Positions 1 to 38,984 of a stretch of DNA of 64,000 bases are shown piece by piece (positions within the stretch are counted from its first letter, which is position 1; every line of letters begins with the position of its first letter). The position numbers and the translations under genes were made by a program. Source of the stretch: Convolutriloba macropyga (Eukaryota); assembly GCF_964194025.1 (NCBI RefSeq), contig NC_134481.1, positions 46,004,001-46,068,000 on the forward strand, in the 5' to 3' direction. A model generated the notes under the pieces. It saw only the letters and a program-made list of their open reading frames with translations. It had not been told where the DNA came from and searched no databases.

Positions 1-331
1 ATCCGGTGTTCTGTACAGCAATGATCCTCTTGAATGTGCGGAAATCGATTCTTGGTTAACCATTGCCGATGATATTGCGGAAGGAAAATTAACTAATTTT
101 GAAGCAGTTGATAAACGAATTTCGACTCTTACCTATTTGGTAGGGCACCGTTTCACAGTGGCCGACGTGTCATTGGCCAACGCTTTGTATTTTTGCAAAG
201 TTGACATTGAAAAGTTCACTCACATAAAACGCTGGCAGAAATTGATGATGACCGAAATCAGTATGCCGACAAACTTGCCTCAAATGAAAAGTGGTGCTTC
301 AGTAGAAGGTAGTCCAAAATTTGCCGATTAG
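1..331 (+). pseudogene. Partial duplicate of the EPRS 5' coding region (GST-like domain), truncated, ending SPKFAD-stop
   Basis: 1-319 is identical to 1315-1633; the frame then runs into unrelated sequence and stops at 329-331. The 5' part lies outside the window. Confidence 0.8.
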
Positions 332-405
332 AAAGCTGTGAAACCTATATTGAGAGAGGGAGAGAGAGAAAAGTAGTATGCCATTGATTGTGGTACACCA
401 ATTAT

Positions 406-528
406 GGGTCTTTCCCATTATTGCCCCCCCCCCCCCCCAGCTTAGTGGTCAGATAACTCATGTCCCCCCAATCATGTTAAACATACCATAATGGTGTGGG
501 GGGAGGGGGGTTATAATAGGAAAGACCT
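406..528. mobile_element. MITE with TIRs and 8-bp TSD (related to the GGATC family)
   Basis: TIR GGTCTTTCCCATTAT / ATAATAGGAAAGACC; flanked by CCAATTAT on both sides; shares the CAGCTTAGTGG motif with the GGATC MITEs. Confidence 0.7.
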
Positions 529-990
529 CCAATTATTTGCATTGAAAAAGCTCTCATGAAGTGACAGCTCTCATGGCTGTCCGGCTAACAGGAGTCATTT
601 TGGAACAAAATAGTTTTAGCGGCGTGAAATTGTCAGACTAGTACACATTGACGTCCTTGAATGAGAATGGAACCTAAATGAATATCCGCGCAGTTGTGAT
701 CTATGGAAATAATTCTCTGAATGCTCTATGAATTGGATGGCTGAAATCAATAACAATTGTTTTTCCCCTTCTTCCGAAACAAATAATGGCTAATCAAGAT
801 TCCATGGCGCCCCGCATTCAGTTGTGCGTTTTACACCCCGCTACAAGAGATTGATCTATCATTTTGTAATCGCTTTCATTGCCATAGCTTTCAGAAATGC
901 CGGACTGTCTTGTGTAAGCTGTAGGTCTCTCTTACTTCGCTTTCTTGACTGCTATCTAGTTCGGCAATAGTTGAGTCTTACTTTCTATGT

Positions 991-999
991 ATTGCATCA
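991..999. promoter_or_regulatory. C/EBP-ATF (amino-acid response) element upstream of EPRS
   Basis: ATTGCATCA (= TGATGCAAT) about 160 bp before the EPRS ATG; TGACGTTA CRE-like sites at 1021 and 1045. Confidence 0.4.
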
Positions 1000-1159
1000 G
1001 ACGGCAACAAATGTACCGAATGACGTTAGCGCCACATTTAGATATGACGTTATTCAGAGGTGATACATTTAGACTCTCTGGTAGTTTTTTGTTAAGAATC
1101 ATTTGAAGCGTAGACTTAAAAGCTTACGGTTGTATACAAAGAATTCGTTTTTTTCAGAG

Positions 1160-4100
1160 ATGTTGTCATTGTTACCTTTGTTAAGTCAATATTCACAGTC
1201 GCATGGACTCTCGTTCGACGCAAAATTAGAGGGTGATAGCGTTGTTCTGAATGGAACAAAATTTGAGAAACTTAGTTGCTCGAGCTTAATGCGTTACTAT
1301 GGTCGGTTTGTATCATCCGGTGTTCTGTACAGCAATGATCCTCTTGAATGTGCGGAAATCGATTCTTGGTTAACCATTGCCGATGATATTGCGGAAGGAA
1401 AATTAACTAATTTTGAAGCAGTTGATAAACGAATTTCGACTCTTACCTATTTGGTAGGGCACCGTTTCACAGTGGCCGACGTGTCATTGGCCAACGCTTT
1501 GTATTTTTGCAAAGTTGACATTGAAAAGTTCACTCACATAAAACGCTGGCAGAAATTGATGATGACCGAAATCAGTATGCCGACAAACTTGCCTCAAATG
1601 AAAAGTGGTGCTTCAGTAGAAGGTAGTCCAAAAAAGAAAGCAAAGCAGGAGGACGTTGGTAAATTTGTGGATCTTCCTGGGGCTGAAATGGGAAAGGTGG
1701 TTGTTCGATTCCCGCCAGAGGCTAGTGGATACCTTCATGTTGGCCATGCCAAAGCCGCACTAGTCAACCAATACTATCAGCAGACTTTCCAAGGAAAATT
1801 GATTCTACGATTTGACGATACAAATCCTGCCAAGGAGAATGAGCACTTTGAGAACGTGATTAGAAAGGATCTGGAAATGCTGGAAGTTAAACCAGATTGC
1901 GAAACCAGAACATCGGACTACTTCGACGTTATGCTTGATTTATGTGAGAAAATGATAAAAGACGCGAACGCTTATGCTGACGATACCGATGCTGACACAA
2001 TGAAGAAAGAACGCGAAGCTAGAACTGAAAGTAAAAACAGGAGCAACAGTGTCGAGAAAAATCTTGCCATGTGGCGCGAAATGGTGAAAGGTACTGATTA
2101 TGGTCAACAATGTTGCATACGTGCCAAAGTCGACATGAACTCAAACAATGGATGTATGAGGGACCCAACCCTTTACAGGTGTAAGAACGAAAGTCATGTC
2201 GCGACTGGTGACAAGTACAAAGCATATCCAACTTATGATTTCGCGTGTCCAATAGTCGACAGTATTGAAGGTGTAACCCATGCATTAAGGACGACAGAAT
2301 ATCACGACAGGGATGAGCAGTATTACTGGTTAATTGAAAAATTGCAACTCAGGAAGCCTTACATTTGGGAGTACGCTAGATTAAATCTGCAAAACACCGT
2401 TTTGTCCAAACGAAAGCTGACCTGGTTGGTCAATCAAGGAGTTGTTGATTCCTGGGAAGATCCGAGGTTCCCAACAGTTCGTGGAATTTTGAGACATGGA
2501 ATGACTGTGCAGGGTCTGAAAGATTTTATCGCAGCGCAGGGAGGTTCAAAATCGATTGTGCAAATGGAATGGGATAAAATTTGGGCTTTTAATAAGAAAA
2601 TCATTGATCCGATTGCGCCCAGATACACGGCACTCAGCGAGGAAAAATTGGTACCTGTAACTCTCTCAGGAATTGATTGTGAAGAAATGAAGGAGCAGCA
2701 ACTACATCCCAAAAACAAAGAGGTTGGTACTAAACAGGTGGCTTACTGTAAGGTTATATTAATTGAACAACAAGATGCAGTTTTGCTCAAAGAAGACGAA
2801 AGTGTGACTTTAATCAACTGGGGAAATTGCATTATCAAGAAAATTGAGAGATCCGATGATGGGAACGAAGTTACCAGTATCCAAGGACAGTTGAATCTGG
2901 AGGATACGAACTTCAAAGCTACTAAACACAAACTAACTTGGCTCCCAGAAAAACACTCACAAGTCAACTCTATTCCAATAATTGCCAGAACCTATTCACA
3001 TCTGATTTCAAAGCCTGTCTTAGGCAAAGACGAAGAAATGAAAGACTTTGTAAACTGGGATTCCTTAAAAGAGGAAAACTTGCTGGGAGATCATAACATG
3101 GCAAGCGTGAAATTAAGAGACATCATTCAAATTCAGAGGAAAGGGTTCTTTATCTGTGATCGCCCGTACGAACCCTTCAACCCTGTTATTGGGAAAGACC
3201 TCCCTGCAATCTTTATTTATATCCCAGACGGGCACAAGTCCCAAGAAGACCAGGAAAAACAACAAGTTCAAGTCACTTCAAAGAGTTCGAAGCAAAACAA
3301 AGAGTTGAATGATTCGAAGAAACAAAAGCAGAACCCTAAAACAGCGGAATCGGGCGATTCCAAATCAAATCAAAGCTTGGATTTGACGGCTGTTAGGAAA
3401 CTATTTGAATCTATTTCAGCTCAAGGCGATGAAGTGAGAAAATTGAAGACAGAGAAAAAGCCACAAGAGGAAGTCAAACCAGCAGTTGATAGATTGCTTG
3501 CCTTGAAAGTCGAGTTCAAAGCAATGACAGGGATTGATCATTCTCCAAAAGCTATGGAAAAACTCTCAGCAGGAGGTGTTGAAGGCTCTGAAAATCAGGA
3601 AAAGCCGAAGGAAAAGGAAGCGAAGAAGCAGAAAGATAACAAAACAGTAGAATTGGGTGACACAAATTTGGTGAAAAATATTGATTTAACTGCTGTGAAA
3701 AAACTGGTCGACAGCATTACTGAACAAGGCAATTTAGTCCGAGAGTTAAAGACTGCGAAGAAACCACAAGACGAAGTAAAACCAGCTGTTGACAAGTTGC
3801 TAGCGTTAAAGGCTGAGTTCAAGACTTTAACTGGATCTGATTATAATCCCCAAGTTGCTGAGAAATTGCTAGCTTCTAAAGCCGAAACTACCCAATCGAA
3901 TAACACTGATGTTAACATTGACGACCTTGACCAGAAGATTTCAGCTCAAGGTGAGAAAATCAGAGCTCTGAAGGCCCAAAAAGCTTCAAAAGACGAAGTT
4001 CAACCCGAGGTAAATATTCTATTGGAACTGAAAACACAGTTTAAGAATTCAACTGGCAATGATTGGAAACCGAAAGCAGCAGCAGGCGGAGATGGTGGTG

Positions 4101-5758
4101 ATAAGAAATCTACCCCAGCTAAGGAACATGATAAAGAGAACGCGAAAGGGTCGAAAAAGCAAGAGAAAAAGAAAGGCCAAGATAAGCCGAAGGAAAAGCA
4201 ACAAGGTGGCAATGATGGTGATGGTGGCGACGGTGGGTATAAAAAGAAGGAAACGAAATTGGGTTTGGGAATCACAATGGAAGATAATTACTCGGAGTGG
4301 TATACGCAAGTTATCACGAAAGCTGAAATGATTGAGTATTATGACGTATCTGGGTGTTACGTGTTGCGACCTCTTTCATACGCAATTTGGGAAAAGATTC
4401 AAAGTTTCTTTGACGGAGAGATTAAAAAGCTGGACGTTGAGAATGTTTACTTTCCAATGTTTGTTTCAAAGTCTGCCCTGGAACGTGAGAAAGATCACAT
4501 TGCCGATTTTGCCCCAGAGGTTGCGTGGGTGACGCGGTCGGGTAAAAGTGAGTTAGCCGAGCCGATTGCAATTCGACCCACGAGTGAAACTGTGATGTAC
4601 CCTTCTTATGCTAAATGGATTCAAAGTCATCGAGATTTGCCCTTAAAGTTGAACCAGTGGAACAATGTTGTGAGGTGGGAGTTTAAGAACCCAACGCCTT
4701 TCTTGAGAACTCGCGAGTTTCTGTGGCAGGAAGGTCACACCGCATTTGCAACTCGAGAGGAGGCCGTTGAAGAAGTGCACGCAATTTTGGACCTGTACGC
4801 ACGCGTGTACGAGGAACTTCTGGCGATTCCCGTGATCAAAGGTAGGAAAACTGAGAAGGAAAAATTCCCTGGCGCTGATTTTACGACAACAGTTGAAGCT
4901 TTCATATCTCAATGTGGACGAGGAATACAAGGAGCGACTAGTCACCATTTGGGACAGAATTTCTCGAAGATGTTCAACATTGTGTTTGAAAATCCAGATA
5001 AGCCAGGCGAGCAATGTTTTGCGCATCAGAACTCCTGGGGGTTGTCAACGCGAACTATCGGAACTATGGTTATGGCTCATAGCGATAACAAAGGGTTGGT
5101 TTTACCTCCTAAAGTTGCTCATTTCAAACTGGTTGTGGTTCCCTGTGGTATCACAGATCAAACAAACGAAAAGGAATTGTTCGACAACTGCTCTAAGATG
5201 TGCCAGGAGCTAAATGATCATGGTCTCAAAGCGAAGACAGATCTGCGCCCGAATTACAGCCCTGGGTGGAAGTTCAACCACTGGGAGTTGAAAGGGGTTC
5301 CAATCCGAGTTGAAATTGGTCCCAAAGATCTCCAGAAAGGTCAAGTCACCATGGTCCGGCGAGATACTGGCGAACGGTCCTTTGTCAAACGTGATCAAGT
5401 TATCACAGCGGTCGAGGAAATGCTGGATGTTATCCAGAAAAACTTGCTGGAGAGGGCGAAGACTAACTTGAGCACGCATTTGAAGGTCACAAAGAGTTTT
5501 GACGAGTTTTGCTCGTTGCTGGATCAGAAGAATATTTTACTGGCACCGTTCTGTGGTGATAAAGATTGCGAAGGCGAAATCAAGGAAGAAAGTGCCAAAG
5601 GTCGAGATCTGGACGCTAATGCTCCGTCTATGGGAGCCAAGAGTCTGTGTATCCCATTCGAACAGCCAGAGGGTGAAGACGTGACCAAGTGCGCTTGTAT
5701 CAAACCAGGGTGCAAAAATGCGCCAAAGAAGTTTACTTTGTTCGGTCGGAGCTATTAA
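1160..5758 (+). CDS. EPRS: Bifunctional glutamyl-prolyl-tRNA synthetase, 1532 aa, single coding exon
   Basis: N-terminal GST-like domain; GluRS with RFPPEASGYLHVGH, YPTYDFACP and VLSKR; three WHEP repeats (~3410-3550, 3713-3850, 3935-4075); ProRS with IRPTSET, REFLWQEGH, QGATSHHLGQNFS and C-terminal FGRSY. ATG 1160 follows a TTTTCAG acceptor; the ORF-track TTG start at 1103 is unlikely. Confidence 0.97.
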   Translation: MLSLLPLLSQYSQSHGLSFDAKLEGDSVVLNGTKFEKLSCSSLMRYYGRFVSSGVLYSNDPLECAEIDSWLTIADDIAEGKLTNFEAVDKRISTLTYLVGHRFTVADVSLANALYFCKVDIEKFTHIKRWQKLMMTEISMPTNLPQMKSGASVEGSPKKKAKQEDVGKFVDLPGAEMGKVVVRFPPEASGYLHVGHAKAALVNQYYQQTFQGKLILRFDDTNPAKENEHFENVIRKDLEMLEVKPDCETRTSDYFDVMLDLCEKMIKDANAYADDTDADTMKKEREARTESKNRSNSVEKNLAMWREMVKGTDYGQQCCIRAKVDMNSNNGCMRDPTLYRCKNESHVATGDKYKAYPTYDFACPIVDSIEGVTHALRTTEYHDRDEQYYWLIEKLQLRKPYIWEYARLNLQNTVLSKRKLTWLVNQGVVDSWEDPRFPTVRGILRHGMTVQGLKDFIAAQGGSKSIVQMEWDKIWAFNKKIIDPIAPRYTALSEEKLVPVTLSGIDCEEMKEQQLHPKNKEVGTKQVAYCKVILIEQQDAVLLKEDESVTLINWGNCIIKKIERSDDGNEVTSIQGQLNLEDTNFKATKHKLTWLPEKHSQVNSIPIIARTYSHLISKPVLGKDEEMKDFVNWDSLKEENLLGDHNMASVKLRDIIQIQRKGFFICDRPYEPFNPVIGKDLPAIFIYIPDGHKSQEDQEKQQVQVTSKSSKQNKELNDSKKQKQNPKTAESGDSKSNQSLDLTAVRKLFESISAQGDEVRKLKTEKKPQEEVKPAVDRLLALKVEFKAMTGIDHSPKAMEKLSAGGVEGSENQEKPKEKEAKKQKDNKTVELGDTNLVKNIDLTAVKKLVDSITEQGNLVRELKTAKKPQDEVKPAVDKLLALKAEFKTLTGSDYNPQVAEKLLASKAETTQSNNTDVNIDDLDQKISAQGEKIRALKAQKASKDEVQPEVNILLELKTQFKNSTGNDWKPKAAAGGDGGDKKSTPAKEHDKENAKGSKKQEKKKGQDKPKEKQQGGNDGDGGDGGYKKKETKLGLGITMEDNYSEWYTQVITKAEMIEYYDVSGCYVLRPLSYAIWEKIQSFFDGEIKKLDVENVYFPMFVSKSALEREKDHIADFAPEVAWVTRSGKSELAEPIAIRPTSETVMYPSYAKWIQSHRDLPLKLNQWNNVVRWEFKNPTPFLRTREFLWQEGHTAFATREEAVEEVHAILDLYARVYEELLAIPVIKGRKTEKEKFPGADFTTTVEAFISQCGRGIQGATSHHLGQNFSKMFNIVFENPDKPGEQCFAHQNSWGLSTRTIGTMVMAHSDNKGLVLPPKVAHFKLVVVPCGITDQTNEKELFDNCSKMCQELNDHGLKAKTDLRPNYSPGWKFNHWELKGVPIRVEIGPKDLQKGQVTMVRRDTGERSFVKRDQVITAVEEMLDVIQKNLLERAKTNLSTHLKVTKSFDEFCSLLDQKNILLAPFCGDKDCEGEIKEESAKGRDLDANAPSMGAKSLCIPFEQPEGEDVTKCACIKPGCKNAPKKFTLFGRSY

Positions 5759-6700
5759 TGAATTAAAGCAATTGATATCAATTTAATTAAATTGATAAAG
5801 CTGTAAATTATTTGTTACTCTGTGTTTGTCCTGAATGTCGGAGGGGATTGGTACCAGAGAATCTGAACTGCTTTAATTTGTTTTAAAGAAGTTAAAAAGT
5901 CATCAAATTTAATAATTACGCTTTGTATATTTAATAAAGGTTGCTTTTTCCGCTTAGTTCTTTGTGTCTTCTAAAAAGCACCAGATTTATTATATTCATT
6001 GCAATGACCAATTTTTGAGTTCTGATCTGAGAGCAATTGATAATTAATTATTACTGAATAGCTTTCGATGTTCGACCCTCCTCATGTTTTAATGACCGGC
6101 TTTCATTTCAGTTTTCCATCAAAATTTATTTAAATGGCTTCAGTTTTCACCTTATTTTAGCCTCACTTTCTGTTCGATGCCGTTTTCTATGTCAATAAAC
6201 CTCCACAGTGCGTTTTTTTAAATCTTGAAGTGCTATATTATATAGGGAATTATTGGAAGAAGTGTTTGGGGGATCTAAAGCATTTCAACTACTGTGAAAG
6301 TGGAACGGTACTGGATACGAAACAACACCTGTTACTTGCAAGCTTAGTGTGCTAATGATTACACCACTATTAATCTTGTCTTAATCTCTCGGACTTGGGT
6401 ATCCCTAGTAATCTATTCTCTTGTTGCTCGAGTCTTTATTTCTCTAGCCAATTATACGTTAAACCCAAGTAGAGCTCATTGTCAAGCTGTGTCAACCCTT
6501 ATCTTATGCCCAATTTAATCAGATTTTATCTATCGGCCTTCTAACAAGGAACGTTCCTCGTTCCTTATCTATGGAAATTATGTCAAAACACTAGGCTACC
6601 GCAAATTCTTTTTCAATTTTTATGGCTCAGTTAACGTTGTTGCAGTGGTAGAACATTTAAATATTAACTAATATGATTTTGGATTTCGAAATGGAAGAGT

Positions 6701-6934
6701 CTAGCATTCTTCCCCCTCCATATCTGCTGTGTCTATCGTGACCTCCTCGTAATCCTGTTCCAGGGCAGCCAGATCTTCCCTGGCTTCTGAGAACTCCCCC
6801 TCCTCCATCCCCTCCCCCACATACCAATGCACAAATGCCCGTTTTGAGTACATCAAGTCGAACTTGTAGTCCAGTCTAGCCCAGGCTTCTGCGATAGCTG
6901 AGGTGTTTGTTAGCATGCAGACTGCTCTCAATAC
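6701..6934 (-). CDS. TUBA: Alpha-tubulin exon 2 (VLRAVCML...MEGEEC-stop); spliced protein 444 aa
   Basis: Acceptor TTACAG at 6935; continues AK|[36 protein letters not shown]; intron 6935-9197. Confidence 0.95.
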
Positions 6935-7092
6935 CTGTAACTTATGGTATCGTGAACTTTACTTTACTTCAACTTACATTTTAAATGCGTGGATATCGCG
7001 CCTTTTTTTTGCTTTTCATCTAATGAAATTTTCTGGCATGCATGCTGTGGGTGGCTTTTTTCAGGCCAAAAGATAAATTTTGAAAAGCCTTG

Positions 7093-7460
7093 AATTGCTT
7101 CCAAATGAAGTTGGAAGCAATTATTGTCGTGCTTTTGGATAAATTTTCAAAGATTTTCGATTGCCTCTTTTCGTTCATGACTTTTTGGGTGTCTGAATTG
7201 CTCCTTCATTCGCATTAATAAGCAGCTGAACTCAATTTACTCAATTGTTAATAACTAAAAAGTCAAGTGAGAAGTGCACTGAATTTGATTTCATTCTCTC
7301 AATTTAAATCACCGTTATGGTCGACAAAAAGTTCTTTAAAAAATATTCGCAAAGCATCAGAAATTATGCCCCCGGCTGAAGCGAGCTGCAGTATTAACTT
7401 CGATTTAAGGCTTCAATTTAAGGAATTGGCTAGCAATTCTTCTGATGTTATTCGGCCACA
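7093..7460 (+). mobile_element. HINE/DINE-like family C copy in the tubulin intron
   Basis: Perfect 5' stem-loop AATTGCTTCCAA-atgaag-TTGGAAGCAATT; internal AAGCAGCTGAACTCA shared with the copies at 26196 and 46453; degenerate 3' subTIR near 7425-7455. Confidence 0.55.
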
Positions 7461-8147
7461 AGATTTAGCTGACATTTTTTGAGCGCAGCATTTGCAAATT
7501 CCACAAAAAATTAAAGAAAAGGCGGAGTTGAGAATGGAAATTGAAAAGGCGGATCTAAGAATGCGGAAAGCTTTACGAGTTTTGCTCTTGGCTAGAGATG
7601 ACTTTTTGCGTGATCATACACAATGGGTGGAGCCGTATTCAAGTTTTTTTTGTTACAACTTTTTGGGCGATTGATTTTTTTGGTATAAAAATTTATCAAT
7701 CGAAAAACAATTTTCAAGTGAGACAAAAAATGAGATAGCCTTTTTGAAATCTGAAAATTTTGTAATTCCTTAGAAAAAAGCAAGGGTTTTATGATTTTCA
7801 GCTTTCGAAATTCTACTTGCCAGCAAAAATATGCGAATACCGAAACCAGTTAGCATAACACCATTGTTAGTTTCAGCTATGAAAGTTTGAGAATCAGCGT
7901 TATTTTAATAGATGAGGAACTAATAGCTGATGGAAACTTAAGAATGATGTTTATTATAAAAGATTACCAACTAATATCATTTGATTTTTTCCTCAAAAAA
8001 CGGGTTCCGAATAGGTTTCAGCTGAGTTTTGCTTCTTATTTGTTTTTGTGTATGGAATGGAAACGTTGTTTTGCCAAAACGTTGACTTACAGCTTATATG
8101 AAAGCTTTGTACAAAATTCAATAATGAAATTGAAACAAATAGTTACG

Positions 8148-8528
8148 TATGCCCTTGAACGAAGTTTAAAGCAATTACTGTAAACGTGTGTGTCTTTGTG
8201 AAAAATTTTTGCTTGACCGTTTATGTATTTCTGTTCAAGAGCAAACTTCGATTTCAAGTTTCATTCAATTTTTTTTCTTGAGTGATTGCAATTGCTCTCA
8301 TTCCAAAATAAAGTTTTTATTAAAATAAAAGCGATTGTGAGCAAGTGATTAGCAAAACCGTTACAGCTTAGTTGTTATGATGTCACACTGATGTTTGGAG
8401 GCTGAGGGTTGAAACCCTAATGGGGCGCGCTTTTAAACTTATAAAAAATTTTTAAGCTACACCCCCTAAATTAAATAGCCTCTCCACGAATGTTGTTTGA
8501 GATTAATTCATTGGACGTTTGCTATTAT
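8148..8528 (+). mobile_element. HINE-like family C copy with internal tRNA-like segment
   Basis: Alignable to 17982-18341 (gaacgaagttt..gcaatta.tgtaaacg, aaaatttttgcttgaccgttt, aaaagcgattgtgagc); B-box-like GGGTTGAAACCC at 8406. Confidence 0.6.
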
Positions 8529-9197
8529 TTGGTATACTAGTTTATTTGATTTAATTTTTCAGCAGAAACCTATACTTTAAACAGTAGCAATTGGAGCTGA
8601 TGGTTTTACTCTGTACATCTGAGTTTTGGCTTAAATGTTTTCTTGCATGTTCTTTTTTGATCTCATCTGATATTTGGTTTTTGTCAAAAAAAAGGATAGT
8701 TTCCGAGGTGTTGTTTTTCTCTCAATTTTGTGGTGTTGTAATGCCAAGTGTCTTTTTAATCTTCTATCTTAGGCCCATAGTTTTAATACAGATCTTTCGC
8801 CTCGTTAGCTGTAGTATTAGTAGACCTGGATTTGGTTTGAACCACGGGATTCAGAACCTTCAGTTTCCGGTGTCAGTTTCAAGCCGTCAGAATATTTGTT
8901 TAGTTTTTGAAGTTCATTACAGTGTTTACAGGTGCATTTTAGTTGTCATGTACTCTTTTGTATTACAACGGTCGTGTAACTTTTCGTCGCACGTGTCTTT
9001 ACATAGTAGTGTGCCATTTTATAAATGTATCTAGAACCAAAGTTGACTGGATCTCAAAAATATTGCCCGGCATCTCCGAATTTGTTGCGAAATCCTCGCC
9101 CTTCCAAGCAACGTAAAGTTATGGAATGGCGGCCAATAGCTGCACTGGGGAGGTGGGCAAGAATATTATAAATTAAGATTTTGTTTGACTATCTAAC

Positions 9198-10298
9198 CTT
9201 TGCTAAGTCTCCGCCTGGTACAACCGTCGGTGGCTGGTAGTTGATGCCGACTTTGAACCCGGTAGGACACCAGTCCACAAAATTGATAGCTTTCTTAGAC
9301 TTGATATTTGCAATGGCGTAGTTCACGTCTTTGGGAGTGACAGCTCCTCTGTATAACAAACACACTGACATGTATTTACCCTGTCTGGGGTCACATTTCA
9401 CCATCTGAGCTGCTGGTTCAAAACACTGGTTCGTAATTTCAGCCGTTGTTAATTGTTCGTGGTATGCTTTTTCTGCCGAAATAATCGGCGCGTACGTGAC
9501 CAAAGGGAAGTGTATTCTTGGATATGGAACCAAATTTGTCTGGAATTCGGTCAAGTCGACGTTTAACGCACCATCGAAGCGAAGCGATGCCGTGATCGCA
9601 GAAACTACTTGACCTATCAACCGGTTTAAGTTTGTGTATGTTGGTCTGTCTACGTCAATATACCTTGCGCAAATATCATAAATAGCTTCGTTGTCAACTA
9701 GAAAGCAAACGTCAGATTGTTCCAAGCTACAGTGAGTGGTGAGAACCGCGTTATATGGCTCCACGACTGCTGTTGAGATTTGCGGAGCCGGGTAAACCGC
9801 GAACTCGAGTTTACTTCGCCTGCCGTAATCAGCGCTTAGTCTTTCCATAAGCAAAGATGTGAAACCGGATCCGGTTCCCCCACCGAATGAGTGGAAGAGT
9901 AGAAATCCTTGCAGACCATCGCAAATGTCCGCAAGACGTCGGATTCTGTCCAGAACGAGGTCAACTATTTCTTTTCCCACTGTGTAATGACCTCTGGCGT
10001 AGTTGTTTGCGGCATCTTCTTTACCAGTTATCAGCTGTTCGGGGTGAAATAATTGTCGATAAGTACCTGTTCTGACTTCGTCAACCACGGTGGGCTCAAG
10101 GTCGAACAGAATGGCCCTGGGTACGTGCTTTCCAGCCCCTGTATTGCTGAAAAATGTCAGAAATGAGTCATCCGTGGGCCAACTTGTAGCCATGAATCCA
10201 TCGGGGGCTATTCCGTGCTCTAAACAGTACAATTCCCAGCATGCGTTAGCTATTTGAACTCCCGCTTGGCCGATGTGAATTGAAATAACTTCTCTCAT
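9198..10298 (-). CDS. TUBA: Alpha-tubulin (divergent isotype), exon 1
   Basis: [64 protein letters not shown]; phase-0 donor AAG|GTTAGA at 9197. Confidence 0.95.
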
Positions 10299-10338
10299 TA
10301 TGTTGACAACTTTCAATGTTTCAACTGGTTGGTTTACT

Positions 10339-10386
10339 GTTGCCTTGACAATGATATTTAGTCTTCGGTGTATGTAACTTGGTTAC
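10339..10386. promoter_or_regulatory. Two RFX X-box-like motifs upstream of the alpha-tubulin ATG
   Basis: GTTGCCTTGACAAT (10339-10352) and GTAACTTGGTTAC (10374-10386), 40-90 bp upstream of ATG 10298. Confidence 0.4.
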
Positions 10387-10704
10387 TTAAAGACTTCAAC
10401 GCGTAATTCCTAAATCAATGATCCGAGTTGGGTGTTTATTTAGATCGAATTATTCAACATCTAGAATTGTATCTTATGTGAAAGAAATGTGTGAACTTTG
10501 GCAATGTATTGATTAGCTGATTTAATGGTGGTTACGTTGGTTTTTAATGAAGTACTGTGGGATACAGCTGTTGAAAATGGCACGTGCGCTGTTACGATAA
10601 AGACCCTTTATTAGTTAAACGCCATTTTGTTTCCGTACTTTTTAATTCTCAGTAGGGTATTTGTCGACTGTCACCACCCTTAATTGATTAGATGATTAAA
10701 ATTT

Positions 10705-10832
10705 GGATCTATTCTGTTTCGCAAACACCCCCGCCCCCGCAGTGTTTTTTACGCCCCCCAGTTACAATAGCACGTGCGCCTGGGGGCGTAAAAAATATAA
10801 GCTCACTAAGCTTCGCAAAACAGAATAGATCC
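10705..10832. mobile_element. GGATC-family MITE
   Basis: TIR GGATCTATTCTGTTT / AAACAGAATAGATCC; 8-bp TSD TAAAATTT. Confidence 0.85.
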
Positions 10833-11349
10833 TAAAATTTAATGATTTCCCATTCCTGGAAGTCAAAATGAGGTTTTTGTCTGATGCTAACGATTTTTGG
10901 ATCTAGTGCCAGACCTCTTAGCTTTGTGGGTTTCTAACTTCTGCGCTTCCCACGCGGACCTTCATTTTTTGTGCTAAATAAAGGGCATGACTTTCGAATC
11001 CTGTATTGGTGGAATTATTTTTAAACTGATTTTATCGACAACACAGACACAAGGGGTGCATTAGTTTTATTGACTAATAACGCTATAAAGATCCCCCTCC
11101 CCCTCCTCTGAGATTATTGGTGATATATCTTTCCGGGGGGGGGGGGGGGGGGCATAAAAGCTGAAGCAGATAAGATCCAGCTATAATTATTCTCTGTACT
11201 TGTGACCGAAGATAATCAGAGAGGCTCGGTTCGTTGCATATAATTAATTTCAGTCCCTGTTTGAGTTTTCACGTCTTGAACTCAGATGTATTTCCGAGAA
11301 ATTACTCAAGTGACTCATGCTCCATAATAATTAAGTATCGTGGGAAAAT

Positions 11350-11514
11350 GGATCTTTTCCGTTTCTGCCCCCCCAGTACGTTATGCTCCCCCCAGTGACA
11401 GAGCACGTGTCATTACATAATAAATCATTATGTAAAAATATTGCACGTGCGTCTGGGGGTTGCAAATAATATGCACCCACTAAGCTGGGGGGGGGGCACA
11501 AACGGAAAAGATCC
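11350..11514. mobile_element. GGATC-family MITE
   Basis: TIR GGATCTTTTCCGTTT / AAACGGAAAAGATCC; 8-bp TSD GGGAAAAT. Confidence 0.85.
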
Positions 11515-11634
11515 GGGAAAATATCTAGATTTTCTAATTCGGAGCGTCAAACGGCTTGGTTGAGTACAATCTTGGCCATTTCTGAGATATTTCAATTTCA
11601 ACTTTTCGAGAAAGGCAGAATTTTTGGCGAAGCA

Positions 11635-11709
11635 ATGTTTTGTATTGTTTGTGGCAAAGACAACGCGAAAGCCTGCGGAGGCTGTAAAACGTCCCACTAC
11701 TGCTCTAAG
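11635..11709 (+). CDS. MYND-finger protein copy 1, exon 1 (MFCIVCGKDNAKACGGCKTSHYCSK)
   Basis: CxxC-x7-CxxC-x4-YCS, the first part of a MYND finger; phase-0 donor AAG|GTCAGA. Confidence 0.85.
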
Positions 11710-12227
11710 GTCAGAATTTTTCAAGATAGCAGGAATTTCGACTGCGGACTTTTGTTTCTGGGTTAAGTTGATGAAAGCGTTTTCTTGATAGAGCTTAGCA
11801 AGTTACTTAAACGATAAATTGAATGTTAAATCCTAGTTTGAATGGTTGGCGTTTTGAAAAAAGCATTCTTCAATTGTTATCCTAACGTTTTCGAAACATG
11901 TTTGCATGTTGGGGGGGGGGGGGGGGGGGTTATAGCAGGCACAACTACTGTAAATGGACCAGTACTGCATTTGAACCAGGGTTTCACTGGCAAGCCTAAC
12001 GTTCAAACCAGTACACTAACTGGTCGTAAGCTCTCGAACTTAGGCATATCTTATAACCCGTTTTCTTGTTCCTCGAGGCTTCAACTCTCTAGCCAAGTGT
12101 ACATTGAACAACTAGAGCGTCTTGTCAAGCTTAATTTATACCCAATTTTCAATAGGTTGTTTCCTCTACTTTGTAAAAGTTACCCCTGCTATACCACATT
12201 TGTGTATACATTTTTTGCTTTGTCAAG

Positions 12228-14006
12228 GCATGTCAAAAGAAAGACTGGAAGCTACACAAATTAGTTTGAATTCCCCAAGTGAAACCGGAGCATCCGGACT
12301 ACCGAAGTTGCGACCCAGTCGTTGAACGTTCACCAGCTTCGCGACTTAAGAAACGAGGCGAAGTCTCAGAAACTTTGATAAATAAATGGTTCCGAAGTAA
12401 CGAAATTATTCCTGATTTTGCTGCCGAGTACAGAAAAGTATACCCGAATGATGTCGATCATTTCATACGTCTAACGGCTGAGCGGATTTCCATTGTTGAA
12501 ACTCTCGGAGTGCTCGAGAGAGGATACGAAGCATTCTCGGACGAAGATTTTTTGCCGGATCTACTTGCAATGCGCTGGAAAACATCGGATCCGCAAAGTT
12601 TGAAAGCGTTCCTAGGACGAAAAAAATTGAAAGACGGCGACATTTTTGACTGCAACGTAGTACCATACTTGAGTGACTGTGCAGGCAATAATGACGTCAT
12701 GGTCAATTACCAGCAGGTCTTCAGAAACACTCCAAGTGTTCCTTTAGGGTATGAATTTGGAAAGACCTACGTGGGGATCGGGTTCGTCGACTTGAGCCAG
12801 CTGCTCTGGGGAGAATACCAGAATGAAGGAGGAACCCTGCGTTTCTATGGTTACGACCAGGCGGAGGTGACAGTTGGGAGGAGTGTGTTGATGTATGAGA
12901 TGATGAAGGCAGAAGAGAGAGAAGTGAGTGAGAAGACGATTCTGCAGGTCTGGTTCTCATCCTGTTGGGACAGAGAGACACAAGAACAGTTCTTCTCATT
13001 TCTGGACAAACATGTACCCAAAATAAACAACCATCTCCTGTCTAAATACGCCCCCATTTGGAAAGCGAAGAAGGGAATGACTGCCAAACAGGCTCAGCAT
13101 GCTTTTCAGGAAAAGATAAGATCTGTGGACTTCGTGACCTTAAGCAACCTGAGAAAGAAGCAAGATCGCGTTGCATACGCTCGCTTCTTGTTTACAGGAT
13201 ACGTCTCATGGGAAGGTCTCGAAGCATTAGACGATTTAGAGGCAGTTTGTGCAAATGTTACTATGTTCCCGGGGCATGACGAAGATTGGTGTAAAGCAAA
13301 GTTTGAAAATTTTTATGCAACTATTGACATGACTAAATTGTCCCCAATGATTCGGGCGTCTGACAGTTCGATCATATCCTTTCTGCTCGGAGCAACTATG
13401 GAAAGATTTAACAGGTTGAGAAACTGGGTTCAAGAAGAGAAAGTTGTTTGCGAGCTTCAGCTTAAAAGTGTCAAGCTAGATGATGCCAAATTTGCCCAAA
13501 TGATCGGACAGCTGAATCCATATTTGATTGACTGGAGCAATATTCCGGACTACTTGCCAAGGTTAGATTTCATTGACTATGCTATGAAATGTAGTGGACC
13601 TGATACAGTGCATAACTTTCACACGATGAACTGGGTTTATTATGTGTTTGGTTCTGTTTATTTGGACTTCATGGGACGACGTGAACTCCTGGAATCAATC
13701 TATCAATCCTACCGTTCTGCTTTACAAGCACGCGCAAAAGCACGAGAGTGGTGCATACCGCATTTTTGCCGACTTGTTCGTCATCCAGCTTTGTCTCTAC
13801 CTTCTAATGAGTTCACGACCATGTCTATTGGGAAATATGGCGACAAATACTTGCGACATTTCTTAACGGACAGAAACGGGAAAGTCGCGAACCACGTGAA
13901 GTCTGTCGAATTGCAACCTCATCAAGTGTTTGCAAATTGCTCGTCTACAATTTTCTGCGCGTTCTCATTCGATGATGAAATTGTTTTCTGCAACTACCGA
14001 ATGTAA
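12228..14006 (+). CDS. MYND-finger protein copy 1, exon 2; in-frame TGA at 12267-12269 (possible pseudogene or recoded codon)
   Basis: Acceptor TGTCAAG; reads ACQKKDWKLHKLV*IPQVKPEH... then an intact ORF paralogous to copies 2 and 3; AATAAA at ~14260. Confidence 0.8.
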
Positions 14007-14344
14007 ATCTTGATCTGAATTTGGATGACTTCAGTAAAGTACAAACTGAGATCTGGAGAGATTTTGCTTGAGCGCCTTGATGACTCATTAAATTCTCTGG
14101 TTCTGAGACTTCTTCAATTTGTTTTTGCTTTTCATTTAGATATGATATTTCGACTATTGATGTTTTTGATGCTGTGTTATTTATGATTTTTGATATTGAG
14201 GTATTAAATGAATTCTGGAAACTTGAAACTTTGTTTGCCCAATGCAGCTTGTGTATTCGAATAAACACATTTTAAATGGGCTTTATCGGCATTCATTTTG
14301 AATTACTTCCTAATTTGATTAGTTACTTCTGGTTTTTGAGCGCG

Positions 14345-16379
14345 TAAAATGTGAATCACGTATTGTGGTCGGCGTTCGTTTCTACGGCCCAAAAGAGAGG
14401 AATGTTGGTTTTATACAGGTTTATTGCAAACCAAAGGTGAGTATTGGTTTTCCATAGGATTTTACAACTCGAAGGGAGTATTCGTGAAGCGTCCTTTTTG
14501 ATCAATAATGTTGATGGGAGTAAGTGTATTTGAAACAGGAAAAAATTTTGCGGAGGGAATTAAATTTTTGATTACGTGCGGTTTTTTAAAGCAGTTTTTA
14601 TTAGTTTTAACTTTTCATCCAAAGTGGTTTTTTCTCAATTGTTTTGAACAGTTTATATACGTTTGGGATCATTCTTGAACATCTGTTACACCAAATGTTA
14701 GACTTTTAGAAGCAGTTTTGAGGTTTTTTGAAACCAATTTGCCGGTTTAGGCGATTTTATTGCAGGTTTTTGTATCATTCTTCAAATTTACATAGGATTT
14801 GGGGTGGTTTGGTTTAAGTTTTTTTTCAAATGGATTGAGTTATTTTTTATTTGATTGATAATAATTTTGAGCTGTTCTTGTTAAAGAAGGTTAAGTCAAA
14901 TTGTCCTAATTTTGTTGCTATTCTTTCCTGTTAATTTTGTTGCTATTTTTTTAAGTTGAAGCATAGCTGTCGATGACTTGAGCATTGAGTTTTCTTCGTA
15001 CGTTGATTTGTTGTCTAACGTTGGGCATTAATGTTGAAAATATTTGATATATTTCTGATGATCAGTTGAGACTACCACTGGTAAGTAATGTTCAAGGTCG
15101 GAAGGTCATATTATGAGAAGTCATGATCTCAAAACAGTCCCTCTTCTCTATATCCAAACTATTCCCCATATCTAGACCTCCCCCTAAGCCGCCGGCGCCA
15201 CCCAACTACCCATCCCACCTACCCTCCAACTACCTCGCCGCCTAAAAATTTTGTCTCAATTTTCAGAAAGACTTTCTTCAGTTTTACTTGGCAATTATTT
15301 TTCACTTTTGTTATTTTTTTCTGATTTATGTAAGGTTAGAATAGTGTTCATATTGTTTTCGATAAAATGTGAATCACGTATTGTGGTCGGCGTTCGTTTC
15401 TACGGCCCAAAAGAGAGGAATGCTGGTTTTATACAGGTTTATTGCAAACCAAAGGTGAGTATTGGTTTTCCATAGGATTTTACAACTCGAAGGGAGTATT
15501 CGTGAAGCGTCCTTTTTGATCAATAATGTTGATGGGAGTAAGTGTATTTGAAACAGGAAAAAATTTTGCGGAGGGAATTAAATTTTTGATTACGTGCGGT
15601 TTTTAAAGCAGTTTTTATTAGTTTTAACTTTTCATCCAAAGTGGTTTTTTCTCAATTGTTTTGAACAGTTTATATACGTTTGGGATCATTCTTGAACATC
15701 TGTTACACCAAATGTTAGACTTTTAGAAGCAGTTTTGAGGTTTTTTGAAACCAATTTGCCGGTTTAGGCGATTTTATTGCACGTTTTTGTATCATTCTTC
15801 AAATTTACATAGGATTTGGGGTGGTTTGGTTTAAGTTTTTTTTCAACTGGATTGAGTTATTTTTTATTCGATTGATAATAATTTTGAGCTGTTCTTGTTA
15901 AAGAAGGTTAAGTCAAATTGTCCTAATTTTGTTGCTATTCTTTCCTGTTAATTTTGTTGCTATTTTTTTAAGTTGAAGCATAGCTGTCGATGACTTGAGC
16001 ATTGAGTTTTCTTCGTACGTTGATTTGTTGTCTAACGTTGGGCATTAATGTTGAAAATATTTGATATTTTTCTGATGATCAGTTGAGACTACCACTGGTA
16101 AGTAATGTTCAAGGTCGGAAGGTCATATTATGAGAAGTCATGATCTCAAAACAGTCCCTCTTCTCTATATCCAAACTATTCCCCATATCTAGACCTCCCC
16201 CTAAGCCGCCGGCGCCACCCAACTACCCATCCCACCTACCCTCCAACTACCTCCCCGCCTAAAAATTTTGTCTCAATTTTCAGAAAGACTTTCTTCAGTT
16301 TTACTTGGCAATTATTTTTCACTTTTGTTATTTTTTTCTGATTTATGTAAGGTTAGAATAGTGTTCATATTGCTTTCGA
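14345..16379 (+). repeat. Tandem duplication of a ~1017-bp unit derived from HINE family A
   Basis: 14345-15362 and 15363-16379 differ at about ten positions; the unit is similar to 41430-41570 (aatttgaattgtattgg..., ttac.actcgaag.g.gtatt); degenerate family-A 3' end near 16395-16430. Confidence 0.85.
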
Positions 16380-17981
16380 TATTTTATTCTTCGAGCTGTT
16401 TCTGGTCTTCTAGCGGGTATGTTTTTTCTGCTACACTTCATGGCAGAAAAACCTAGTGTTAAAATGAGTAATTTTTCTGTTCGCAGTGCTTCTACTGCGT
16501 TTAACAAGCAACTTATACTTGCAGATTAACCGCCATTAGTTTTTTTTACAACATAACGTAGACTTTGTTCTACTATTGGTATGAGATTTGTGTTTGTACA
16601 AAGGGAAACACAATTATAAAATGTTTAAAACGCTTAATTCGCGTTTTTTTTATGTGAAAATTTATTACGATTTTATCTTGTGCTGCATTTAGCACTTTAA
16701 ATCGATGTTTCAATGGGCTGGCAAAATGTTTAAAAATTAATGGAGAAACCTTGAATTTTACATTGTTTTTTATTCATCTGATCAGTTCGGTTACCTGTTT
16801 GAAATAGTGGTCTGGCTGTATTATATCCTCAGTTCACTTTGTTCTTCAAAGTTCTCATCATTTCTTATAGGATAAATCCTATAGTGCCTAATTAGGAGAT
16901 TTTAAGTGATTTAAAAATATGCGTATTTTGTAGCCAATTAGACTTTAAACTTACCATATAATTGGGGTGTCGAGAATGTGATTTGTTTTCACGAGAAATA
17001 TAGGTTTATTTGGAATGTTATGATCGGCTTGTTTGTATAAGCAATTTAAATCAATGGAGTTTTGATCTGCTTTAATTAAGAAAGAAAATCATGTCCGAAA
17101 GAATGCTCATTATTTGTGTTAGTTGTTTTTGGTTCAATATATCTGATTCATTTTTTTCGTCCCGATCTGACGTCACTCTGAAATCAGTTTTTGGTAATTT
17201 TTTCGGGTAATGTTTGACAGTGATGTGCGTAGGGTTTTTTCAACTCCTACGGTCTTAATTCTATGTTACGAGCTTGAATAGTTTCTTAGAATCGCAGATC
17301 GAAACTACCTGTCTACATCGCAAATATCGTCTGGTAATCTTCAATCTATGTTTCCACTTGAAATATGTTAGATTCAACATAGAAATTTTATGGAGTTTTA
17401 AAGAACTTAAAGATAAAGTGATTTTGTGAAATGGTTCATCCCTAGCTTCAATATTTTGATGAAATTTTTTACGATGAGTTTTTAGATTGTCTAGATTTGT
17501 GATAAAATTATACATTTTGATGCGATTGTTTTCTATTGTTATGGAGAGATTAAATGTAATATGGCATTTGGTGCATGAAAAATGTTTATTTTTAGTATAC
17601 TGGTCAAAAGCAGATATGAACTGCTGTGAATTTAGACCAGTTAAGAAACAAATGGAAAAGTTTTTGTTTTTGCAGCTTTTTTTAAAATTATTATTCTGCG
17701 AGTTTCTTGCCATAAATGCCACATGCATGAACAATCCAAAGTCCTTTTTTATATCACCCGACTCATAATAAGCAGAATTGTGCCTTTCTTTGATTGCGTC
17801 TCTGAAAATGGACCAATGCACTTAACTCTATGAATGGCTGGCGTTGTTCAAATTTCAAAGTTTTATTAGTTCATGGTAAAGAATGCTACACCATACTCCT
17901 TCGCAAAATCAGACATTAAAATCACTCTTTTAAAGAACTGCTTGTTCTCACGGTAACAATAAGCTCAGCAATCTTTTCTAG

Positions 17982-20409: not shown

Positions 20410-20487
20410 ATGGCTGTTTGTCGAGTGTGTTCTAAACAAGATGCTAAGGCATGTACGGGTTGCAGATCGGTCCATTATTGCTCTAAG
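20410..20487 (+). CDS. MYND-finger protein copy 2, exon 1 (MAVCRVCSKQDAKACTGCRSVHYCSK)
   Basis: Homologous to the copy 1 first exon; same phase-0 donor position AAG|GTTCGT; too short for the ORF track. Confidence 0.85.
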
Positions 20488-23939: not shown

Positions 23940-25733
23940 GAGTGTCAAAAACGGGACTGGAATGAACACAAAAAGTCTTGTAACAAAACAACTCAAGTTG
24001 TGAAACCTAAGAACGAAGCGGCTAAACCCTCTGCTAAGAATAGCCCAAATGACATCGTGAAAGTACCCAAAAGACTGAATCCTTCTGATTATCTCATCAT
24101 CATGGAGCGAAACAAGTCCATGATAACTGATTACGCCATGGAGTACAGGAAAAGGTTCCCGAATGAATTTAACCGGGTTGCAACTTTGGCAATGGAGCGT
24201 ATGCAGACGCTTGTAACAATGGCCTCCATTGAGGAGGGTTTTGAGGCGTTTGCTGACGAGGACTTTGCTCCCGAAAGGTTTATGCAGCGTTGGAACACTT
24301 CAGACATTGAAGGTCTTACGGCATTTCTTAAGAGACCTGATTTGAAAGATGGTGATATCTGGAGCTACGATACGTTGCCTTACTTGACTAGCAACCTTGT
24401 TCAGTCGAGAAGTCAACAAATTGTGAGGAACACAATTAACCATCAGCAAATATTACGTAACACTCCTTGTCCTCAATTAATTTTCGATTTTGGAAAGACC
24501 TACGTGGGAATCGGATATGTAGATCTGTGTCAACTGCTCTGGGGCGAATACCAAAATGAAGGTGGAGGAACCCTGCGTTTCTATGGTTACGACCAGGCAG
24601 AAGTGACAGTTGGGAGGAGTGTGTTGATGTATGAGATGATGAAGGCAGAAGAGAGAGAAGTGAGTGAGAAGACGATTCTGCAGGTCTGGTTCTCATCCTG
24701 TTGGGACAGAGAGACACAAGAACAGTTCTTCTCATTTCTGGACAAACATGTACCCAAAATAAACAACCATCTCCTGTCTAAATACGCCCCCATTTGGAAA
24801 GCGAAGAAGGGAATGACTGCCAGACAGGCTCAGGATGCATTCACAAAACATCGCAGGTCCTGTGATTTTATGCCCATCAATAATCTCTTGGCTGTAGACG
24901 ATCAAATTCATTTTGCAAATTACCTATTCACTGGAGCTTTGTTCATGGACAAAAACCGCCCTATTGATTCTCTATGTGCGAATGTAACTATGTTTCCTGG
25001 TTCTTCGGAAGATTGGATTAAAGTTAAGTTCGAAGACTTCTTCAATACAATTGATATGAACACTCTATGTCAACAATTTGGACCATCGAGCAGATCGGTG
25101 ATTGAATTGATTTTGAAATCGACAGAGAGCAAGTTGAAAAAACTGAGGAGTTTTGTAAGAGAAGGCAAAATGCTTTGCAAGTTAAATGTCAAACAGGTCG
25201 CGACCGACGATTCTAAGTTTGCGAAAGAAGTTAGGAGCTTAGATCCTTATTTTATAGACTGGAGCAACATTCCGGACTATTATTCGAGGCTGGACTTCAT
25301 CGAATTGGCGCGAAAATGCAGCGGTCCAGACACTCTCCATCATTTTCATACCATGAACTGGGTCTACAAAGTTTTCGGAGCTTCGTTCTACGATTTCGTC
25401 GATCGCCGTGAGGTGATTGAAAGCATTTACAAGAAGCACAAGAAAGTTATGGAACCGGTAAACCAGATGTTACGAATGACGTCGCCTGATTTAACAAGAT
25501 TGGTCCGAGTTCCAAAGCTGAACCTCCCTGTCAATGAGTTCTCAGCTTTGGCAGTTCAAATTCATGGCGAAAAGTATCTCAAGCATATTATGACTGATAA
25601 AAAGGGGAAAGTCTTGAACTTTGTCAAAACTCCATTCAATCACTACTGGCAAATATTTGGAGACAATGACACGCTTATGATATGTGCCTTCTCTTTTAAC
25701 GATGAGTTGGAGTTGGGTCTGAAATATGTTTAA
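23940..25733 (+). CDS. MYND-finger protein copy 2, exon 2; spliced protein 623 aa
   Basis: Acceptor TAATTAG; ECQKRDWNEHKKSC completes the finger; long ORF with YVGIGYVDL, QVWFSSCW, IDWSNIPDY, HTMNW; AATAAA at ~26010. Confidence 0.9.
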   Translation, partial: ECQKRDWNEHKKSCNKTTQVVKPKNEAAKPSAKNSPNDIVKVPKRLNPSDYLIIMERNKSMITDYAMEYRKRFPNEFNRVATLAMERMQTLVTMASIEEGFEAFADEDFAPERFMQRWNTSDIEGLTAFLKRPDLKDGDIWSYDTLPYLTSNLVQSRSQQIVRNTINHQQILRNTPCPQLIFDFGKTYVGIGYVDLCQLLWGEYQNEGGGTLRFYGYDQAEVTVGRSVLMYEMMKAEEREVSEKTILQVWFSSCWDRETQEQFFSFLDKHVPKINNHLLSKYAPIWKAKKGMTARQAQDAFTKHRRSCDFMPINNLLAVDDQIHFANYLFTGALFMDKNRPIDSLCANVTMFPGSSEDWIKVKFEDFFNTIDMNTLCQQFGPSSRSVIELILKSTESKLKKLRSFVREGKMLCKLNVKQVATDDSKFAKEVRSLDPYFIDWSNIPDYYSRLDFIELARKCSGPDTLHHFHTMNWVYKVFGASFYDFVDRREVIESIYKKHKKVMEPVNQMLRMTSPDLTRLVRVPKLNLPVNEFSALAVQIHGEKYLKHIMTDKKGKVLNFVKTPFNHYWQIFGDNDTLMICAFSFNDELELGLKYV

Positions 25734-28099: not shown

Positions 28100-28299
28100 N
28101 NNNNNNNNNNNNNNNNNNNNNNNNNNNNNNNNNNNNNNNNNNNNNNNNNNNNNNNNNNNNNNNNNNNNNNNNNNNNNNNNNNNNNNNNNNNNNNNNNNNN
28201 NNNNNNNNNNNNNNNNNNNNNNNNNNNNNNNNNNNNNNNNNNNNNNNNNNNNNNNNNNNNNNNNNNNNNNNNNNNNNNNNNNNNNNNNNNNNNNNNNNN
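28100..28299. other. Assembly gap (200 N)
   Basis: Run of N. Confidence 1.
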
Positions 28300-37680: not shown

Positions 37681-38984
37681 TGAATTTAGCGACGGTTTGG
37701 AGATATTATGAGAAGTACTCATCTTCAATTGTACTGTACTTCTATATGTTAGAGAAAAATGTACGTGTACCGCAGTTTTTTCTCTTTGATCAAGTTTTGT
37801 TAATTACGTCCTGAAGAATACCAATTGTTTTAGTGACGCAAACTGAAAAGGAAAAAAAGAATGAATATTTTAATGAAACTCCAAGCCGCTCTTTTGTATA
37901 GTTCTTCTTTTTTCCACTTGAAAAGTGAAACAAAGTTTTCATAATTAATTGAAAAGATGAGAACATTGAATCTGGACAAGAAAATTGAAATTGTTACATT
38001 TCTCTTTTCATAGCTTTAAGAGCGTAGCTATATAAGCTACTCTTTGTTAATTTGTTTGGTCGTCTGTTGCCCAATTTTGCAATCTAACTTTTGTCAAATA
38101 AAGAGTATAGCTATTGAAATTTTCATCTTTCTATCACCTTCTCTGACTGCTTTTTGGTGCTTGAAGTTTGGTTATCCTCTATAACCGTTAGTTTTCAGAT
38201 TAATTGCGCAATTAATTTGGTCCTAGATGTCTACCCTCAATGTCAAATTACTTTTAACATAAATGTCATTTTCTGAATGAAGCCAGTAATAGTAATGCTT
38301 GCCCACAGCACTTCGACGGCTTTGTGTTTCCCTGAAGTGTGTGATCAAATATGATGTTTATTTACATGGCTGAAACAAAAATTCACATCACACATAGATG
38401 TTTGTGAAATATAGAAAACTGAAAGCAAAGTTTGAAGGCAACAGTGGAGAAAGTTTAGAACGAAATTTCATTAACATTTGACTTTCGTCTGAATCCATCT
38501 TTTTCCCTTTCTCTGAGTTTCCATATTGTTTTTGATCACAAAGCTCTCCAATTGATGGGAAATTTAAACGAGCCCATCGTGATTGTAACAGAATAGGAAC
38601 ATGTTTTTTTTTCTCGAATACTTAGAATAAACTGAAGAATCAAATCTTTAATGTAAGTGGGTAAGAGGTTGTTATAACTGGGAACATAAAAGGTTGACCA
38701 AATCTGGAAACTATATTTCCAGAATTTCCAAACTATTTTGCCAGAATGGAAAGAAAAGAATGGAGAAACAAAGAGTAGAAAAAATTTTATTGTTTCACTT
38801 TCTCTAAATGTCGAAGCTAGCAGTAAAAGCGATGACTCAAGTTTCACCTCAGTTTCTTGTATTGAAAAAAAACGTACCAAAACTTTCTCCGAGAACAATG
38901 TGTTCGCTATCCGAGGAAGAAGTTGCGATGGTCAACAGAGTTGAAAAAGATTTTTTTTTCAGATTATTTGGTATTTTACTCAAA

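Follow-up and report, generated by a model that had tools for sequence, protein, structure and literature searches.

A premature TGA at the last zinc-ligand codon of a MYND-finger gene in the acoel Convolutriloba macropyga is very probably a young heterozygous nonsense allele

How should an in-frame TGA be read when it takes the place of the last zinc-binding cysteine of a MYND finger and is followed by a long open frame? The question is raised by a tandem gene family of the acoel Convolutriloba macropyga, found in the stretch of 64,000 nucleotides that was analysed (C15:46004001-46068000 of the 1.176-Gb assembly; hereafter the window, to whose first letter positions refer unless stated otherwise). 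The window holds three two-exon genes of this family, each coding for a MYND zinc finger followed by a C-terminal domain of about 575 aa. A first reading of this DNA, made from the sequence only, had pointed out the TGA in copy 1 and left three explanations side by side: a zinc finger made through selenocysteine insertion or readthrough, a null allele of recent origin, or a wrong base. As reported below, the evidence supports the young null allele, and neither the recoded finger nor the base error held up. The features of the three genes are the following.

11635-11709, + strand: copy 1 exon 1, starting with ATG, 25 codons (MFCIVCGKDNAKACGGCKTSHYCSK), coding for Cys ligands one to five of the MYND finger
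11710-12227, + strand: copy 1 intron, GT..AG, acceptor AG at 12226-12227
12228-14006, + strand: copy 1 exon 2, with the end of the MYND finger, the DUF4470-like domain of about 575 aa and a TAA stop
12267-12269, + strand: copy 1 premature TGA at codon 39, where the eighth zinc ligand belongs, with A at 12269 against C (TGC) on the alternate haplotype
14007-14290, + strand: copy 1 probable 3'UTR, with AATAAA at 14261-14266
20410-20487 (exon 1) and 23940-25733 (exon 2), + strand: copy 2, with TGT (Cys) at 23979-23981 at the homologous codon
32595-34403, + strand: copy 3 exon 2, with TGT (Cys) at 32634-32636 at the homologous codon; the gene ends naturally on TGA, with A as the next base

The intact parts of copy 1 on which the sequence-only reading relied were all recovered from the sequence, namely exon 1, both splice sites (the donor reads AAG followed by GTCAGA, with its GT at 11710) and the codons behind the TGA. 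Exon 2 opens with A-C-Q-K-K-D-W-K-L-H-K-L-V-TGA(12267-12269)-I-P-Q-V, so that the TGA does stand at the last zinc-ligand cysteine, where copies 2 and 3 have TGT; 578 sense codons follow (12270-14003), up to the TAA at 14004-14006. Copy 2 corresponds to the C. macropyga protein XP_075262157.1. For copy 3, the exon coding for the N-terminal part of the finger was sought between 26000 and 32594 and was not found; it may lie inside the N gap at 28100-28299. Genome-wide, the family comprises about six full-length members, plus fragments, and a homologue search found no orthologue of copy 1 in a sister species. Elsewhere in the window, a 415-aa ORF with an RMKL-like (UPF0020) methyltransferase domain was noted at 44690-45937, and a 449-aa Ser/Arg/Pro-rich ORF with no Pfam match at 38808-40157. 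The copy 1 intron contains a poly-G run (about 11906-11930) whose length varies between copies and haplotypes, and a dispersed repeat of about 240 bp (11925-12167) present in more than 50 genomic copies of 74-81% identity, some of them in short tandem arrays.

Once spliced, the finger of copy 1 reads C3-x2-C6-x7-C14-x2-C17-x5-C23-x3-C27-x7-H35-x3-[codon 39], the intron splitting it between 'YCSK' and 'xCQ'. With the TGC allele described below, the spliced N-terminus matched the Pfam zf-MYND family (PF01753) over the whole profile (1-39/39, 48.3 bits), all eight ligands being present in the canonical C4-C2HC spacing and residue 39 falling on the final profile position. With X in place of the stop codon, the allele of the window matched profile positions 1-37 only, and it lacks the eighth ligand. 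A cysteine occupies the codon-39 column in 6/6 homologues that include the finger.

The C-terminal domain of copy 1 gave no Pfam match at E values up to 1, DUF4470 (PF14737) included. Weak PF14737 matches were obtained with 11/19 relatives (best E 7.5e-5), and a language-model search linked the domain to DUF4470 and MYND-DUF4470 clusters with a feature score of 0.95. An AlphaFold model (pLDDT 82.6, pTM 0.84) aligned with a MYND/DUF4470 cluster at TM 0.69/0.64 over 474 residues, with DNAAF3 at TM 0.49/0.61, and weakly with class-I methyltransferases of the PDB. The family resembles the MYND + DUF4470 proteins, which are mostly fungal, and DNAAF3 (DUF4470 + DUF4471), in what appears to be a DUF4470-like, methyltransferase-like fold behind a MYND finger, but its sequence is very divergent. 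Within this domain, a tract of about 300 bp (12800-13092, + strand) is 93-100% identical in DNA between copies 1-3, against 35-70% elsewhere, which indicates gene conversion. Across 12837-13204, not a single SNP separates the two haplotypes of copy 1.

The A at 12269 is very unlikely to be a mistake. Contigs of X1, X2 and X4, three runs made on three different samples, have it at a depth of up to 96, and so do a contig of a separately built assembly (L002, 107x) and the second genomic copy of the gene (L004). The PacBio library was of the amplified ultra-low-input type (PMC13650328), which could be held in favour of a sequencing or assembly error hiding a true C or T, but with the same A in independent runs and assemblies and in both tandem copies, such an error has a practically negligible probability.

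A second version of copy 1 was found in contig L001 (267,860 bp, 54x) of ENA assembly ERZ25071359, which comes from the same project. Codon 39 is TGC in this contig, and its copy 1 frame of 618 codons is uninterrupted. The upstream neighbour in L001 is the same tubulin gene as in the window, and the contig also holds an allele of copy 2 that is 97% identical. Compared with the window, L001 differs in exon 2 by 38 SNPs and one codon indel (2.1%), and by several indels in the intron. When the primary assembly was searched with the L001 protein, no place closer than 97% was found; we conclude that L001 represents the alternate haplotype rather than a paralog. The same version was met in a 2016 run from a different study (X5), where the sole contig over 12269 reads C, at a depth of 20.2/20.2, and has the intron indels of L001 at 12094 and 12140. 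Moreover, contigs of X2 and X4 contain clusters of L001-type SNPs (13256-13315, 13526-13585 and 13709-13760) at 26-32% of the local depth. Both haplotypes are therefore present in the animals of the genome project. All samples may derive from a single laboratory culture.

The C at 12269 itself was not seen in the contigs of X1, X2 and X4. The evidence from runs consists of assembled contigs, and contigs drop minor variants, so that a missing C at this position is no evidence of its absence. No joint spliced across 11709/12228 was seen in them. Isolated SNPs of the L001 type are all missing from these contigs, and the clustered ones survive; the C is most likely missing because bubbles at isolated SNPs were removed during contig building, which is an argument and not a read count. 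The UGA is in any case not common to both alleles: L001 and X5 read TGC, and the TGA is polymorphic, an outcome that the sequence-only reading had named in advance as speaking against a novel decoding.

The reference haplotype holds two copies of the TGA allele. A tandem duplication of 31.39 kb was found, with units at C15:45958310-45989700 and C15:45989701-46020381 that are 99.8-99.94% identical. Its features within the window are the following.

1-16381, no strand: right-hand duplication unit, counterpart of G000:C15:45972610-45988974, carrying EPRS, the tubulin gene and copy 1
1103-5758: ORF of EPRS (glutamyl-prolyl-tRNA synthetase), intronless, 1551 aa, inside the duplication
9189-10316, - strand: tubulin ORF, inside the duplication

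The junction of the duplication lies in a repeat of about 1 kb (14345-16381) that starts directly after copy 1. From BLAST offsets, this repeat has a period of about 1018 bp, too long for the settings of Tandem Repeats Finder, and consists of two to three units that are 99% identical. In the upstream unit, the gene (L004) is the same as the window copy, TGA included, except for eight G in the intronic poly-G run. In the ENA assembly, the contig with the TGA (L002) has 31,403 bp, is flagged as circular, and reaches 107x, against 54x for the TGC contig L001; the duplication was collapsed there into a 'circular' contig at double depth. A similar relation was observed in X2, in which the depth was 88 for sequence common to both duplicates, and 38-40 for stretches peculiar to a single duplicate or to L001. 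These ratios of about 2:1 fit two TGA copies and one TGC copy. They would be equally compatible with triploidy (AAB) in place of a tandem duplication. The primary assembly amounts to 1176 Mb (1175.98 Mb), the size estimated from k-mers being 867 Mb (PMC13650328), and retained haplotypic or recent duplications may be common in it.

We then considered the direction and the age of the change. TGA is the derived state, because all paralogs and all homologues bearing the finger have Cys at this codon; and since both tandem duplicates have it, it either arose before the duplication or was copied along with it. A comparison of the two alleles gave a dS of 0.053 and a dN of 0.013 (19.5 synonymous and 18.5 non-synonymous differences). 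The resulting dN/dS, a check that had been proposed along with the first reading, was 0.24. The amino-acid differences, for example L118, Y389 and W534 on the TGA haplotype against F118, F389 and L534, fall at variable columns, neither allele being systematically deviant, and no second stop or frameshift was found in either of them. A dN/dS of 0.24 together with the lack of any further lesion points to purifying selection during most of the separation of the haplotypes, and to a young stop. An old pseudogene would be expected to show several lesions and a dN/dS near 1; here, there is a single lesion, and a dN/dS of 0.24 relative to the intact allele.

From these results, the TGA of copy 1 is very probably a young heterozygous nonsense allele (TGC>TGA) in a member of a tandem family, located in a duplicated segment of the reference haplotype and facing an intact allele. 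The sequence of events would have been as follows. A single C-to-A change would have turned the TGC of the last zinc-ligand cysteine, codon 39, into TGA on the reference haplotype. The 31.4-kb segment carrying the gene would then have been duplicated in tandem, giving two TGA copies on that haplotype, while the other haplotype of the same animals retains TGC and the full frame of 618 codons. The sequenced animals would thus be heterozygous, with about two TGA copies for one TGC copy. Translation of the TGA allele would end after 38 residues, and the allele is probably null, as the whole C-terminal domain of about 575 aa would be lost. The mutation is presumably young, as no further lesion is found in the frame behind it, and it could be tolerated given that an intact allele and paralogs remain, and that the culture also reproduces asexually. 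Segregating nonsense alleles in tandem paralog families, or young undegraded pseudogene alleles, share all these traits: one base is changed (TGC>TGA), the other allele is intact, any other lesion is lacking, and the gene lies among redundant paralogs and on a recent segmental duplication. Nothing of substance sets copy 1 apart from them; it is the fact that the change struck a zinc-ligand cysteine that gives it the look of a selenocysteine codon.

Several ways in which the TGA allele might still yield a product were weighed against this nonsense allele. Translation could start at a downstream AUG and produce the DUF4470-like domain without its MYND finger. The first in-frame AUG past the stop, at 12570, opens a frame of 478 codons. 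A premature stop in the last exon is not expected to trigger exon-junction-dependent mRNA decay, and the TGA of copy 1 is in the last exon. Three out-of-frame AUGs (12386, 12448 and 12451) nevertheless precede the one at 12570, and a start at this site would lose about 100 conserved residues of the domain. No database protein begins at 12570, 12699 or 12891, and no NCBI protein model of copy 1 with a downstream Met start was found. We consider a finger-less product improbable.

Alternatively, a near-cognate Trp, Cys or Arg tRNA could read the UGA at a useful rate and give a full-length protein. These tRNAs are known to decode UGA at low frequency (PMC4150775, PMC4748822), and the long intact frame behind the stop is what such a readthrough would call for, but this frame is equally well explained by a young mutation. 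The context is moreover unfavourable: in yeast UGA-C is leaky, whereas UGA-A is not, and favours Trp over Cys (PMC4748822). Copy 1 has UGA-A (UGA-AUU), not the leaky UGA-C or UGA-CUAG, and UGA-A is the normal terminator of its paralog copy 3. Judged by the MFE z-score only, there is no stable structure downstream of the TGA. Genes with programmed UGA readthrough, of the MDH1 type (PMC5133446), likewise have a UGA followed by a long open frame; they differ from copy 1 by their UGA-CUA(G) context, by conservation, which is lacking here, and by the nature of the extension, which is a short functional tail in their case and would be the whole protein in that of copy 1. Useful readthrough by a near-cognate tRNA thus appears quite improbable. 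If selenocysteine and near-cognate Cys or Trp tRNAs are taken together, a useful decoding of the UGA of the duplicated reference copies, despite the missing SECIS and the TGC partner, is highly improbable; were it true, the last zinc ligand of the MYND finger made by the animal would be recoded or a residue other than Cys.

A further proposal was that the UGA is decoded as selenocysteine (Sec), so that a selenolate would serve as the last zinc ligand of the MYND finger. The TGA aligns exactly with the Cys of every homologue, 578 open codons stand behind it, and the genome does have means for Sec insertion, as judged from a check that covered tRNA-Sec and one selenoprotein, a glutathione peroxidase (GPx). 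The tRNA-Sec scored 77.4 bits (cut-off 47), and was called SeC by ARAGORN, with anticodon tca. The GPx gene (L020, G000:C5:60998082-61001399) has a TGA in its NTASK-U-GKAT site (NTASK*GKAT). About 90 nt after its stop lies a SECIS (L020:2059-2112) with an AUGA core, a 9-bp helix 2, an apical AAA and a 3'-side GA, whose fold had a z of -2.79, none of 200 shuffles (0/200) being as stable. A second probable SECIS was noticed behind another GPx (L023:3042-3090). As for further selenoprotein controls, PF10262 gave no match, and PF08806 gave a match without SECIS in the fetched flank.

No such element was found at copy 1. The pattern scanner that recovers the GPx SECIS was applied to 12228-17000, and reported no SECIS-like element in the probable 3'UTR (14007-14290), in agreement with the first reading, which had seen no canonical SECIS there. 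Its sole strict match in 12228-17000 was a GUGA/CC with a 55-nt apical region, in a satellite repeat (14437, repeated at 15455), for a background of about five or six strict matches per 64 kb per strand in the window. A relaxed match was obtained inside the coding region, at 13480. All candidate regions, including that at 13480 and the ATGA at 14025, to which the first reading had given only a short helix, were no more stably folded than their shuffled counterparts (z +0.28 to +1.13). Rfam models run over 10000-17000 (E up to 10) gave no SECIS either, a weak negative since the SECIS models of Rfam release 15 failed to report that of GPx as well (E up to 1); a whole-genome search with RF00031 was empty everywhere, controls included, and is uninformative. 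That Rfam SECIS_1 missed a textbook SECIS means that Rfam screens of this acoel will give false negatives, and that surveys of its selenoproteome need a dedicated SECIS tool.

With neither its 3'UTR nor its coding region holding a SECIS, copy 1 differs from eukaryotic selenoprotein genes such as the GPx gene of the same genome, which it resembles by an in-frame TGA at the Cys of homologues and by a genomic background of tRNA-Sec and SECIS elements. It also differs in that the TGA is absent from the other allele, and in that the site is a structural metal ligand and not a redox-active residue. To our knowledge, Sec has not been described as a structural zinc ligand. The TGC of the allelic partner marks the TGA as a recent single-base change, and a newly arisen UGA can be read as Sec only where a SECIS is already in place. 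The TGC partner and the missing SECIS together make a Sec zinc finger very unlikely, to the point of being scarcely tenable, and this part of the sequence-only reading has to be given up.

Three further escapes were discarded. A cryptic 3' splice site skipping the stop is available at AG 12278-12279, but an exon starting at 12280 is out of frame and opens with TGA. A variant genetic code in which TGA is Cys or Trp does not agree with copy 3, which terminates on TGA, nor with GPx, whose TGA is a Sec site with a SECIS. A-to-I editing of the UGA was judged unlikely, as it gives UGG (Trp) and not Cys. In sum, rescue of the TGA allele by readthrough, a downstream start, a cryptic acceptor or a variant code is not supported.

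For annotation, it follows that gene predictors should not treat the copy 1 locus as a selenoprotein. The primary assembly contains the putative null allele twice, the intact allele being on the alternate haplotype, and an annotation based on the primary assembly only will call copy 1 broken. The heterozygous premature stop described here is of an ordinary kind. The C. macropyga genome has a heterozygosity of 3.65%, and the Bergen culture buds asexually (PMC13650328); at such a heterozygosity, it is commonplace for one member of a redundant tandem family to have a premature stop in the heterozygous state, and the case matters little in itself.
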